Source of the DNA: Octopus vulgaris
Taxonomy: Eukaryota
Assembly (NCBI GenBank): GCA_951406725.2
Contig: OX597816.1
Coordinates: 33,666,001 to 33,730,000 of the forward strand
Direction: 5' to 3'
Length of the DNA: 64,000 bases
Positions 11,550 through 46,730 of this stretch are shown piece by piece. The position numbers and the translations under genes were made by a program. Within the stretch, counting starts at the first letter, position 1; each line of letters opens with the position of its first letter. The notes under the pieces were generated by a model. It worked only from the letters and a program-made list of their open reading frames with translations, ran no database searches and was not told the origin of the DNA.

Positions 11550-11736
11550 CGTATATATATATATATATATATATATATATATATATACATATATATACAT
11601 ATATATACATATATATACATATATATATATATATATATATACATACATATATATACATATATATACATATATATACATATATATACATATATATATATAT
11701 ATATATATATATATATATATATATATATATATATAT
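11550..11736. repeat. (TA)n array flanking the 3' tail of LINE copy 1
   Basis: Direct reading. Confidence 0.95.
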
Positions 11737-12630
11737 TTACTCTCTTTTACTCTTTTACTTGTTTCAGCCATCCGGCTGAGGCCATGCTGGGGCACCGCCC
11801 TTGTTGCTACCCTCTCTAAGTCCAGTTTGCCGTGGCTGGCCACTGATCTAAGAGAGAGTTTGTAGCTGCTGCCCTTAGGTTACCTTCGTACCTTGCAGTG
11901 GGTTCATCTGGGATCCCGGAAAGCAGCTTGTCTAGATGTTTTTTGAAAATGTCCACATCCGCATCATGTAGATCTCTTAGTTTTCTTGGCAGTTTGTTGA
12001 AAAGCTGAGGGCCCCTGAACCCCAGGCTATTACAGTATCTGCTCCTTACCCTGGATGTGGAAGACGGGACCTTTGGCACCACACAGTGACGTCCTGTACG
12101 GGGATTGGAACAGCTCTCAATTCCAAAATTTGGTGCTAGTCCCTCCAGGATTTTCCATATGTATATCACTGCATATCTCTCTCGTCTTCGTTCCAAGGAG
12201 TACAAATTGAGTTCCCTAAGCCTCTCCCAATAGTTCTTTTCTTTCATGGTGGAAATCCTCTTGGTGAAATGCCTTTGGATTGTCTCAAGCTCTGTGGTTA
12301 GTTTGACACTATGCGGTGACCACAGTTGGGAGCAGTAGTCCAGGCGGCTTAGGACAAATGTCCTCCATAGTGTCAACATGGTCTCGCAGTCTCTTGTCCG
12401 GAATATCCTCAGGATCCAGCCAGTGAGTCATCTGCACATTGTCGCCACCTTCGCGATGTGTGAAGAAAAAGATGCATCGTCACTCATGTCTATCCCCAGG
12501 TCCCGTATTGATTTCGATACTGGGATTTCGATCCCTCCTGGACCAGTATAGTTGTGTTGTAATGTATATGTGTTTACAGCTTGATATTGTAAGGCTTGAA
12601 ATTTACCAGCATTAAATTGCATGTTGTTGC
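11737..12630 (-). mobile_element. 5'-truncated CR1-group LINE, copy 1 (RT C-terminus plus 3' UTR)
   Basis: ORFs 12428-12622 and 11816-12379 are in one frame, separated by a single TGA (likely CGA>TGA). Motifs [54 protein letters not shown]. The tail ends GGCGGTGCCCCAGCATGGCCTCAGCCGGATGGCTGAAAC followed by AGTAAAAG repeats. Confidence 0.93.
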
Positions 12631-12888
12631 ATGTATATATATATATATATATATATATATATATATATACATATATGTATATATATGTATATATATGTAT
12701 ATATATATATATATATATATATGTATATATATATATATATATATATATAAATAGATATATACATATATATATATATAAATAGATATATACATATATATAT
12801 ACTTGGATAGGTTTCGGCCATTATTGGCCCAGGCCATGTCTAACTTAATAGCACCACCTGGTGCTATAAATATATATATATATATATA

Positions 12889-43014: not shown

Positions 43015-45999
43015 TCATGGAGGCTTTCTAGCAACTGCTATTTGGTGCATGAGAGAGTTCGATGCAGCTGCCCTCATCTGCCCCTCCTGCCGTGAAGTTG
43101 GTTCATCTGGGACACCTGACAGGAAGAGATCCAGCTTCATTTTAAAGACATCTGTATCCACCCCATGCAGGTCTCTCAGGTTCTTCGGGAGGATATTGAA
43201 GAGCTGTGGGCCTCGGAAGCCCAGGCTATCACAGAATCTTGTCCTACATCTTGATGGCAGGTTTGGACTCCTAGGCACCACGCAGTGGCGCCCAGTTCTG
43301 GCATTTGCGTAACTCTCGATGCCAAAGTTCAGGACACTTCCCTCCAGGATCTTCCAGATGTATATTATGGCATATCTTTCCCGCCTACGCTCCAGGGAAT
43401 ATAATTTTAATCTCTTGAGTCTTTCCCAGTAGCTTACATTCTGCATAGAGGCTATCTTCTTTGTGTAGCTTCGTTGGATCGCCTCAAGTTCTGTGATCAA
43501 CTTGACACTGGATGGTGACCATAGCTGAGAGCAATAGTCAAAGTGGCTTAGGACAAGTGTCTTCCAGAGGACCATCATGGTTTTTGTTCTCTTGTTCTAA
43601 AGGTTCTAAGAATTCATCCAGCCAGCCGTCTACATTTCATTGTCAGTTTAGCAACATGTACATGAAAGGTCGCGTCATCAATCATGTGAATACCCAGGTC
43701 ACGCACTGATTGTGCCTCTGGGATTGCAATCCCTCCGGGTCCAGTGTATTCATTGGGTGTTGCATTCAGTTTTGCATGCTGATAGTATAAAGCTTGAAAC
43801 TTTCCAGCATTGAACTGCATGCTATTCTTTTCAGCCCACTTGTATATTTCGTCCAGCTCACATTGCAGGTGTTTAGTGTCCTCAGGGTTCTGTATTGCCT
43901 GTGAAACTTTTGTATCATCTGCATAACTTGTGATCGTGGTTCTCTGCGTGGCTGAGGGCATGTCTGAGAGGGTCATTATGAACAGTAGTGGTCCCAGAAC
44001 AGTGCCCTGCGGAACACCGCTCACTATTTGTGTGTTAATAGAGGTGGCCCCATTGGCTACTACCACCTGACTTCTATCCTTCAGAAAGTCATGAAGCCAT
44101 TCTCCCAGTTTTCCAACTATGTTGAGATCACGCAGTTTGTGACATATCATTCCATGATCGACTTTATCAAAGGCCTTTGCAAAGTCGAGATATATCACTT
44201 CCACATTTGAGTGGTTGAGCAGCCGTTTCAGCACCCAGTCATAGTGTTGTAGGAGCTGAGTTAAACAGCTTCTCCCTGGTCGGAAACCATGTTGGGTGTC
44301 GGGCAGCAAGTCATTCTCTTCAAGGAAGGTGATCAGCTTCCTTCTGACTATTCGTTCCATGACCTTGCTGATGTGTGAGGTCAGAGAGATAGGTCTATAG
44401 TTCTTGGCTCCCGCTCTGCTACCTCCTTTACGAATGGGGCATATGTTACCTTCCTTCAGTTTTCCTGGAAGTTTGCCAGCTGCAAGGAAGCTCTGAAAGT
44501 GGTCTTGCTAGGACTCTCTTACATGCTTTTAGGAGGATTGCCGGGAATCCATCGGGGCCAGTAGCTGAGTCTGTTTTCATTTCATCTATAGCCTTGGTTA
44601 CATCGTCTTCCTTTATATCGATGTAATCTATCGTCGCCGCCTCTGATTTTATATCTGCAGTGGTAAAAAAGTCAGTTGGATTGGTGATTTGGAGATGCCC
44701 AAGGGGTGAAGTGAAAACACTCTTGAATTGCTCATTCAGTATTTCACTTACCCTCATTGGTTTTCCTGTAAGTGTGCCATCCTTTTCGAGGAGTGGCCCT
44801 ATTCTACAGTGCACTGTAGCTGTTTCTTTGGCATACCTGTAGAAAGCTCTGGTGTTAGATTTTATGTTTTCTATAGCCCAGGCTTCTTTGTCTGCTCTTT
44901 CTTTTTCATGGGAGAGTTGCAGACATTTTTCGATTTCCAACAGTTTTATTTTTAGGCGGGACATTTCACTGCTTTCAATCTGTTTGTTTAGGCGATTTGA
45001 AAATTTCGTACGCCGTCTCATTAAAATTTTCCTCCCTCTGGGGATTTTTTTCTTGTGTACAGTGGCCTTTCTCTCTGGGACACATTTGTAGCATATGGCT
45101 TGCATTACAGACATGAATTGTTGAAGTTTCACGTCGATGTCTGGCGAGGAGAGACATTTAGGCCAGTTTTGTTTGAGGATCTCTTTCTCAATTTGTTTCC
45201 AGTTTGCCTTATGGTAGTTCAAGCTGGAAAGATTTTGAGGGTTTCTTGTAGGTTGCATGTCCGTGCTCTCTTTTGGCCCGTACATGGTCAGCTCTATCAT
45301 GTTGTGATCCGAGAGTAGTGTCGGTGTCACTTTCACATTATGGATGAGATCCATGTCATTTGTGAAGCAGAGATCCAGTGTGTTACCTGCCCTGGTTGGT
45401 TGGAGTATTACCTGCTCCATGTACAGGGTGTTGATGAGGTTCAGGAGGGACCTCGCCTGTCCTCGTTCACATCTTGTCATTCCTGGGAGAGAAAGGCCCT
45501 CGGGCCATCTGACATTGGGCAGATTGAAGTCTCCCATAAGAAGCACACCTATGTGTTGTTCTAATGTGGTTAGAATTTCTTCTATTTTTATAAGGCAGTC
45601 TTCAATCTTGCCCACATGGCTTGGGGCATCTGTAGGGCGATATGTAGCACACACAACTACATCAAGTTGCCTAATATGTACAATTAGTGTGTCACACACC
45701 GAGTTTGAGTATGACAAGAGGACCTGGGGTGTGAGGTCCTCACGGATGTACATAGCAACACCTCCATGACTCCTTTCTTTCCTGTCGGTCCGTAGTACAG
45801 CATACTGTGGTATGTGTAACTCCGCATCTGCTATGTCCGGTTTCAGGTGCGTTTCTGTAAGTGCTATGCATAAGGCTTGATTGCATGCAACAAAGTCTCT
45901 CAGGAACGGGATCTTTGTCCTGTTACTGAGTGTTTGCAGTCCTCTGATGTTCAGTAGGAGTATCGAGGTGAGGTGTACGTTGTTGCCGGCGGTGTCCAT
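43015..45999 (-). pseudogene. LINE ORF2 (APE endonuclease plus reverse transcriptase), disrupted
   Basis: APE motifs LLNIRGL, LTETHL, GGVAMY, MGDFN, TLDLCF, SDHN. RT motifs NYRPISLTS, QHGFR, YLDFAKAFDKV, GVPQGTVLGP, YADD. Lesions: a frameshifting deletion near 44495, TGA in place of Trp at 43614-43616, and a 1-bp deletion near 43580. Confidence 0.93.
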
Positions 46000-46715
46000 C
46001 CTGTGTCTGTTTGCTGTGGTGGTCTGGTATATAGTGGGTAGTCCCACCTGCGGTCTTGGGTTTGATGAAGCCAGGTCAGCTGCTGTACAATCTTTAGTGC
46101 CATGCATTGTTGCTCAGCAGCTGCTCTTTCGACAACATCATGTTGGCTGTTTGTGGCGCGCACAACATCTGCGTACCTCCGCTTTGGGGCAGGTGGTGCG
46201 TGGTCCATCCCTTTTCTTTGTGTTGATGGTTTGTCCATCTGCCTCGTGTCTCTGTGGCAGGGTCCCCGTTGTGCAAAGCGGCAGCCTGCACCTTCCTTTC
46301 CATGCCAGCAGGAACCTCTCAGGTAGAACATACACACCCGTGTGCGCTGTTTGGTTCCATCCTTTGCGGTTCCACTTCTATTCCTGGTTGTTTCACTCTT
46401 TGGTCCTGCTTGAGCTTTTTCTTTTCCTTTAGTTCTTCCAGTCCTTCTTTTAGTTCTTCTTCCTCCCTCTACCTCTTCACCGGGTTCTCCGTCTCCATGG
46501 CCCTTGCTGCCGGTTGGAGAACTTGCACCTGGGTTCACTTCCCGGGCAGGTTTCTCATTCAAAACCTCCTCCCGGAGGTCCACCAGGTGGGGGAGACTTC
46601 TTTCATCGTCTCCCTTCTTGCCATCTTTGCCCCGCTCGTTCTCAAAGATGGCATCAAGTGCGCCAATGTGCGACCGTACAAGCGCATATGAGCGCACGAA
46701 TTCCTGTCTCTGCAC
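45951..46715 (-). CDS. LINE ORF1-like protein (acidic/basic low-complexity region plus CCCH-type finger), probably 5'-truncated
   Basis: 254-codon open frame upstream of and overlapping ORF2. It contains C-x7-C-x8-C-x3-Q at 46269-46334 (CAA, one substitution from His). It starts at GTG, not ATG. Confidence 0.75.
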
Positions 46716-46730
46716 GAATTCCTCTCCACG

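Follow-up and report, generated by a model that had tools for sequence, protein, structure and literature searches.

Apparent preference of CR1-like LINE families for (TA)n microsatellites in Octopus vulgaris

We conclude that at least three coexisting young families of long interspersed nuclear elements (LINEs) in Octopus vulgaris probably integrate preferentially into (TA)n microsatellites, a reading to which we give a probability of roughly 0.8. The elements combine an apurinic/apyrimidinic-type endonuclease (APE) with a reverse transcriptase (RT) in a CR1-like architecture. A copy of each family lies in the 64,000-nucleotide stretch of A+T-rich, microsatellite-dense eukaryotic DNA analyzed here (contig OX597816.1, positions 33,666,001 to 33,730,000; below, the window). 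All three copies are on the minus strand, are 5'-truncated, and adjoin (TA)n directly at both ends. The initial annotation had described TA at both junctions of each copy, with no unique sequence between element and array, and its coordinates were reproduced. The copies and their arrays, the latter located with TRF and from the sequence, are as follows, with open reading frames abbreviated as ORFs.

11552..11736, (TA)n array, immediately 3' of the family-1 LINE copy
11737..12633, minus, family-1 LINE copy, 5'-truncated; RT C-terminal domain and two-hairpin 3' domain
12634..12801, (TA)n array, immediately 5' of the family-1 copy
12865..12889, short (TA)12 run, immediately 3' of the family-2 copy
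12889..13960, minus, family-2 LINE copy, 5'-truncated within the RT, with 329 codons of open frame
13962..15891, 1.9-kb (TA)n array, immediately 5' of the family-2 copy
42471..42929, (TA)n array, immediately 3' of the family-3 copy
42930..46730, minus, family-3 LINE copy, 5'-truncated and broken by frameshifts
42930-42995, minus, family-3 tail and hairpins with (TCAA)n
43015-43578, minus, family-3 ORF2 C-terminal domain
43614-44360, minus, family-3 RT (PF00078)
within 44446-46107, minus, family-3 APE endonuclease (PF14529, PF03372)
45951-46715, minus, family-3 truncated ORF1 with a CCCH-like finger
46732..47856, (TA)n array, immediately 5' of the family-3 copy

The family-1 copy, in which an ORF at 11816-12379 encodes the RT C-terminal domain, ends in (GTAAAAGA)n; the family-2 copy ends in (TTTAAGGA)n, adjoining the TA run at 12865-12889; and the (TCAA)n of the family-3 copy passes straight into its array with zero intervening bases. 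Identity among the three is 69-77% in protein, over 180 shared residues, and 71-77% in DNA (23-29% diverged); they are therefore distinct families, not subfamilies. They had been annotated as independent insertions of different subfamilies; a DNA divergence of 23-29% raises the rank to that of separate families. For three independent insertions all to fall in arrays, p is ~0.002 at a background of 13%.

LINE junctions and the (TA)n background

For junction reading at the scale of the 2.8-Gb genome, 40 family-3 loci (L001 to L040) were fetched. In 32 of them, the terminal repeat runs directly into a TA-type array of 12 bp or more, and in 28 the array measures 20 bp or more; the flank is ordinary in the remaining 8 of 40. 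Random window positions have an array within 9 bases in 11.4% (at least 12 bp) or 9.0% (at least 20 bp) of cases, and the excess at the 3' junctions over this expectation is significant at p ~1e-21 to 1e-23 (binomial). Arrays occupy 11.8-13% of the window, where an estimate by eye had suggested about a tenth. (TA)n is 2.3 times as frequent in the window as across the genome: perfect 20-base alternation, (TA)10, has 33.1 million starts genome-wide, or 1.18% of positions, versus 2.73% in the window. Scaled from these perfect-(TA)10 counts, the TA-array share of the genome is ~5-5.7%. Unselected samples consisted of the first 100 matches along chromosome 1 of N-padded patterns, classed by eye from the 11-19 flank bases shown; the corrected TA shares allow for a non-C last letter of the pattern.

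Family-3 tails, 100 of 2,704 matches: 72 TA, 16 non-TA, 12 unreadable; TA in 82% of readable rows, ~79% corrected
Family-2 tails, 100 of 1,871 matches: 57 TA, 31 non-TA, 12 unreadable; TA in 65% of readable rows, ~60% corrected

The LINEs are 12- to 16-fold enriched in (TA)n. A comparison of junctions with background had been proposed in the initial annotation, and in the reduced form run here it gave TA at the 3' junction in 70-80% of the 40 copies against a background of ~5%. The outcome that the annotation had set against its own proposal, no TA enrichment over background, did not occur: genome-wide shares are ~80% in family 3 and 60-65% in family 2. These values, like that of the 40 copies, exceed the Kojima criterion of one kind of sequence in >20% of flanks (PMC4494074). 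Arrays as short as 12-25 bp serve as targets, and insertions outside arrays have target site duplications (TSDs) that are absent or only a few bases long.

Both ends of the copies bear on the order of events. The 5' junction is readable in 27 copies that are clearly truncated at that end; 18 of them adjoin TA directly, and 3 more lie within 20 bp of it, separated by short duplications or filler. The 5' break points are scattered across the whole element, many of them at an AT or TA, as expected of microhomology-mediated joining to a TA end. The states of the two junctions are mostly concordant per copy: five of the six copies with a non-TA 5' junction also have an ordinary 3' flank (L008, L010, L013, L014, and L034), and the sixth, L040, meets the tail of a short interspersed nuclear element (SINE) on the 5' side, with just 12 bp of TA on the 3' side. 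Three array-edge copies (L004, L032, and L035) have TA on one side only. Identical array variants occur on both flanks of several copies (AAAT-interrupted in L007, TACA in L016, ATGT in L029 and L033, and CA runs in L018). When the sample is split by age into halves, the TA share is equal in both, with ~67-76% in copies that are 0-0.5% diverged versus ~80% in older ones. Given the varied truncation points, the shared variants, and the bias in the youngest copies, we therefore consider that the arrays were present before the elements inserted.

One and the same TA array can contain two or three LINE/SINE insertions that are independent and belong to different families, in some cases arranged tail to tail (L006, L004, L033, and window 11.5-16 kb, and also two of the family-2 tail rows); the arrays act as repeated landing pads. 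In L001 (C6:123176096-123181556), a family-3 copy without its last 81 bases, the TA array adjoins a nonterminal break, which points to later deletion or rearrangement inside the array. A run of N, which may be an assembly gap, makes the LINE 5' junction of L022 (C1:8790251-8795711) unreadable. Within a TA array of the window (55398-56492), 16 copies of a 68-bp tandem repeat (88% matches) form a higher-order satellite growing out of the microsatellite.

The copy numbers are high, and the copies are similar. The family-3 C-terminal domain has 43,884 first-look candidates genome-wide, the best 150 of which, as scored, are all 99-100% identical in protein, many of them in open 1039-codon frames. 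For the family-2 fragment, there are 48,804 first-look candidates; the best 122 scored reach 99-100% protein identity, and over 329 residues at least 80 copies in the genome are fully (100%) identical. The last 1 kb of the 40 family-3 loci differs by 0-0.9% from the nearest relative and by 0.3-1.6% from the sample median. Judged by this similarity, the three families are young and apparently still active. In a recent repeat annotation of O. vulgaris (PMC13282606), CR1 is among the most active LINEs, with 13 recently active families, and targets are not analyzed. In a word search with L005:1170-5461, runs under a dozen organism codes hold 55-66% of the sampled words, which is approximately the LINE part of that stretch, and some of these runs have just 5-6 million contig letters. 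They come either from congeners with near-identical LINE copies or from octopus DNA in other samples.

Element architecture and the partner SINE

Intact family-3 copies have an ORF1 of 303 amino acids that overlaps an ORF2 of 998 amino acids. ORF2 matches PF14529 and PF03372 at residues 43-235 and PF00078 at residues 526-774; its sole C-x2-C lies at residue 303, with none after the RT and so no C-terminal CCHC motif. At the 3' end, two hairpins precede short tandem repeats whose motif differs by family, (TCAA)n, (GTAAAAGA)n, or (TTTAAGGA)n, and there is no poly(A) tail. Across the three LINE families and an associated SINE (SINE A, described below), stem 1 is invariant and the pairing of stem 2 is kept via CG-to-UA covariation. 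A search of Rfam gave no match for this 3' hairpin domain, and no UnaL2-type element. Full-length family-3 elements reach >1 kb further 5' than the window copy, and their 5' untranslated region (UTR) is composed of tandem, partly nested monomers that vary in number, with self-match offsets of ~64, 128, and 310 bp. This region calls to mind mouse L1, with its monomeric promoters, and is found at the following loci.

L023:1-1047, family-3 tandem-monomer 5' UTR; likewise in L015, L017, L020, L021, L024, and L026
L027, L030, L031, L037, and L039, further loci with the family-3 tandem-monomer 5' UTR

ORF1 (L039:3649-4557, minus strand) contains a C-x7-C-x8-C-x3-H finger and has only sub-threshold Torus and zf-CCCH matches, along with a weak Myb/SANT-like match at residues 3-61. 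The combination of this finger with a Myb/SANT-like region is absent from the ORF1 types listed for CR1/L2/Jockey in PMC4120745. An AlphaFold model of ORF1 made without an alignment (pLDDT 48) was too poor and was left unused.

Several traits are CR1/L2-like: APE precedes RT in ORF2, an overlapping ORF1 lies upstream, the 3' end is a stem-loop with tandem repeats, and the ORF2 C terminus has no Cys-His knuckle. Such a knuckle is a feature of L1/Tx1 and R1. Its absence here, as a missing C-terminal CCHC, and the hairpin and tandem-repeat tail argue against membership of R1 or Tx1. The C-terminal domain presumably resembles the conserved C-terminal motif of chicken CR1. The one named close protein relative is from the octopod Argonauta hians, the names of other homologues are uninformative, and a PDB search for RT references returned L1 ORF2p and R2 only. 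We infer, on architecture rather than phylogeny, that the elements belong to the CR1 group.

SINE A has a tail homologous to the LINE 3' domain and shares (GTAAAAGA)n with LINE family 1, which fits its mobilization in trans by the LINE via the two-hairpin tail that the sequences have in common. SINE C, an abundant tRNA-like SINE with a different tail (ending ...GTAAAGAAA) and with TSDs of ~15 bp in ordinary DNA, served as a control.

30403..30816, minus, full-length SINE A; tRNA-like head, internal TG/TA microsatellite, and LINE-type two-hairpin tail
30375-30402 and 30817-30891, TA arrays at both ends of this copy
36543..36949, plus, SINE A, head a few bases short; TA at the head (36487-36542) and a short TA run after the tail
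23840..24210, minus, older SINE A copy; head adjoins TA (24211-24243), tail end outside arrays
54822..55200, plus, SINE A, head truncated on the 5' side and separated by a few bases from a TA run; degenerate tail outside arrays
24289-24575, minus, SINE C; further copies in L032, L014, L010, and L008

Sampled in the same way as the LINE tails, the SINEs gave these counts.

SINE A heads, 100 of 48,946 matches: 27 clear and 8 imperfect TA; 27-35%
SINE A-type tails, 100 of 32,361 matches: 17-24 TA, 15 unreadable; 20-28% of the 85 readable
SINE C heads (control), 100 of 33,547 matches: 2 TA; 2%

SINE A is ~five-fold TA-enriched, and the TA share of SINE C differs from that of the LINEs at p ~1e-33 (Fisher). 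The TA preference is independent of the terminal-repeat motif and specific to elements with the shared tail. The lower TA share of SINE A may reflect age or looser targeting in trans. On re-reading, the four SINE A copies listed above have the TA flanks that the initial annotation gave them, and its caveat that older copies lie outside TA is consistent with this lower share.

In about three-quarters of the SINE A heads in the chromosome-1 sample, the two bases immediately upstream are TA, also where there is no array; the SINE RNA starts two bases before the tRNA-like head, or else the second strand is cut after TA. Approximately 5 of 100 SINE C heads adjoin (ATT)n, which hints that a further LINE, with a preference of its own, serves as partner. 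There is also a third tRNA-like SINE (head GGAGGCGCAATGGCCCAGTGG...), with TA/TG microsatellite flanks (window 20111-20412 and 37912-38185), and the sequence that follows its second copy (38186-38235) resembles a LINE terminal repeat. A recurrent element end (...CAACACAACCCCACCATTT...) adjoins TA arrays at three places (window 24576-24600 and the 3' flanks of L025 and L027) and probably belongs to another (TA)n-seeking family, perhaps of Penelope-type mini-elements.

Mechanism and alternative explanations

The mechanism that we propose, as the most economical one, is ordinary target-primed reverse transcription: the element's own protein would preferentially nick DNA within a TA array, and synthesis would be primed inside the terminal repeats of the RNA via 1-3 nt of A/T microhomology. 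The 5' end, frequently truncated, would then be rejoined to the array, again at AT/TA microhomology, so that the insertion splits the array in two; SINE A, mobilized in trans, would inherit a weaker TA bias. Outside arrays, no TA lies between terminal repeat and flank, and the copied template therefore ends in the family-specific repeat. As for the recognition of (TA)n, we infer that it lies with the APE domain or elsewhere in ORF2p or ORF1p.

Several points weigh against this reading or restrict it. The 20-40% of insertions that lie outside TA arrays indicate a strong preference, not strict specificity, and SINE A is much less TA-bound than the LINEs. The first flank bases of non-array insertions are merely loosely A/T-rich, with no simple cleavage motif; recognition of a tract or of a non-B structure is therefore as likely as recognition of a dinucleotide motif. 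The genome background was scaled from the ratio of imperfect to perfect arrays in one window. That the arrays came first is argued indirectly, from the junctions of the inserted copies.

The bias could instead arise from the fragility of the arrays, if host nucleases cut (TA)n hairpins or cruciforms and the LINE RT primes on such nicks independently of its endonuclease. AT/TA repeats are described as substrates of structure-selective nucleases in a preprint abstract (bioRxiv 10.64898/2026.01.20.700634), and host lesions would suit both the lack of a clear TSD and the lack of an evident cleavage motif outside arrays. However, SINE C, a retroposon of the same genome, is without TA enrichment; arrays of merely 12-25 bp are targeted; 39 of 40 copies have a complete 3' tail; many open 1039-codon frames retain the APE domain; and the element can evidently nick unaided, since 20-40% of insertions are in ordinary DNA. 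We consider an origin in host lesions unlikely. It is very unlikely that insertion is near-random and that copies outside microsatellites are quickly lost by selection or deletion. Microsatellites are plausible safe harbors, and our sample comprises copies present in one assembled genome, but copies at 0-0.5% divergence match older ones in TA share, a 12- to 16-fold enrichment would require the loss of >90% of insertions in that time, and SINE C persists in ordinary DNA.

Two further explanations place the cause in the template or in the arrays themselves. A read-through (UA)n extension at the 3' end of the RNA might anneal to nicked TA arrays, such that the template selects the target. Source copies do reside in TA arrays, junctions show A/T microhomology, and template microsatellites have been proposed to affect priming in RTE elements (PMC6007223). 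Against such a guide, non-array insertions have no (TA)n between terminal repeat and flank, and three different terminal repeats lead to one target; we regard it as highly improbable. The chance that arrays grew from element ends after insertion, or that a TA-rich background produced the pattern, is close to negligible, even though non-LTR (long terminal repeat) elements are known as sources of microsatellites (PMC3812793, PMC2887409) and TA arrays are common, at 12% of the window. Growth from the ends is contradicted by arrays that adjoin random 5' truncation points, by identical variants on both sides, by arrays of several hundred base pairs around copies of ~0% divergence, and by the involvement of three unrelated terminal repeats; a background effect is rejected by the binomial and Fisher tests and by the SINE C control. 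On this evidence, we reject chance or background, array growth from element ends, and read-through (UA)n templates.

Preferential integration into (TA)n can be extended to a broader and more tentative scenario, which we hold to be possible but on the whole doubtful. Targeting of (TA)n would be a lineage-specific innovation in an otherwise dispersed group of LINEs, common to at least three families that are 23-29% diverged in DNA. Rather than a simple shift of the cleavage motif, it could consist in recognition of the array as a structure or tract, by APE or by the unusual ORF1 protein with its CCCH finger and possible Myb/SANT-like N terminus, and the arrays and the LINE and SINE families would co-amplify as self-renewing landing pads.

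Significance and comparison with known systems

Microsatellite targeting by APE LINEs is already known, and (TA)n targeting in a CR1-like lineage is apparently undescribed: we found no report of a CR1-group LINE that targets (TA)n in the full-text literature, a coverage that leaves Repbase Reports and subscription journals outside. If our reading is true, microsatellite targeting would have arisen among APE LINEs a third time, independently. The reading would also help to explain how the octopus tolerates tens of thousands of recent LINE/SINE insertions, and it would explain TA arrays as retroelement mosaics, with effects on assembly, marker design, and the dating of repeat bursts. If the landing-pad reading is true, the process could organize a large part of the octopus genome, approximately a quarter of which is LINEs and SINEs. 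Several related active families, together with nontargeting relatives, are well suited to mapping the determinant of targeting. Such relatives may be found among 80 distant ones (26-47% identical) in metagenome contigs; in the ~20 with a readable 3' end, short tandem repeats of CR1/L2 style close the element and ordinary sequence comes next, and at most one has a TA run, which supports the element specificity of the preference.

The "stringent" LINE-SINE pairs of the CR1/L2 type, such as chicken and turtle CR1 and eel UnaL2/UnaSINE1, are the closest in architecture. Further examples are zebrafish ZfL2 (PMC4245944) and oyster CR1 with Vhc_1 SINEs (PMC4758252). The octopus elements share with these pairs the two ORFs, APE and RT, the 3' stem-loop with short tandem repeats, the tail-sharing SINE, and short or absent TSDs. 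Unlike the octopus LINEs, the CR1/L2-type pairs are described as dispersed, and the searchable full-text literature holds no report of a microsatellite preference among them.

Kibi, Koshi, Waldo, and Mino were reportedly described as microsatellite-specific by Kojima and Fujiwara in 2004. According to two later papers (PMC4494074, PMC4640811), Kibi inserts into (TC)n and Koshi into (TTC)n in the Tx1 clade, and Waldo into (ACAY)n and Mino into (AC)n in the R1 clade. Most APE LINEs are regarded as relaxed in target specificity (PMC4120745), and most target-specific families are placed in early-branched lineages and in the Tx1 and R1 clades (PMC4640811). The octopus LINEs resemble these four in being APE- and RT-bearing non-LTR elements whose copies lie inside one kind of microsatellite, in the >20% flank criterion, and in the logic of a safe harbor. 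They differ in their (TA)n target, in their CR1-like hairpin and tandem-repeat tail, and in having no C-terminal CCHC; in addition, their preference of 60-80% contrasts with the near-strict specificity of Kibi, Koshi, Waldo, and Mino.

An insertion bias for (TA)n itself has been described for the Penelope-like elements Naiad and Neptune (PMC8557442). These elements have in common with the octopus LINEs the (TA)n target, very high copy numbers in invertebrates, and TSDs that are unreadable owing to the repeat. Naiad and Neptune have a GIY-YIG endonuclease, a telomerase-like RT, and tandem or inverted structures, whereas the octopus LINEs combine APE with a LINE-type RT, leave simple copies truncated at the 5' end, and have a SINE as partner; the Penelope-like hallmarks (GIY-YIG and pseudo-LTR or tandem-inverted copies) are absent from them. 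Dong, of the R4 clade, is (TAA)n-specific and carries a restriction-like endonuclease downstream of its RT. It likewise lives in an A/T microsatellite, and it differs from the octopus LINEs in endonuclease, clade, and motif.

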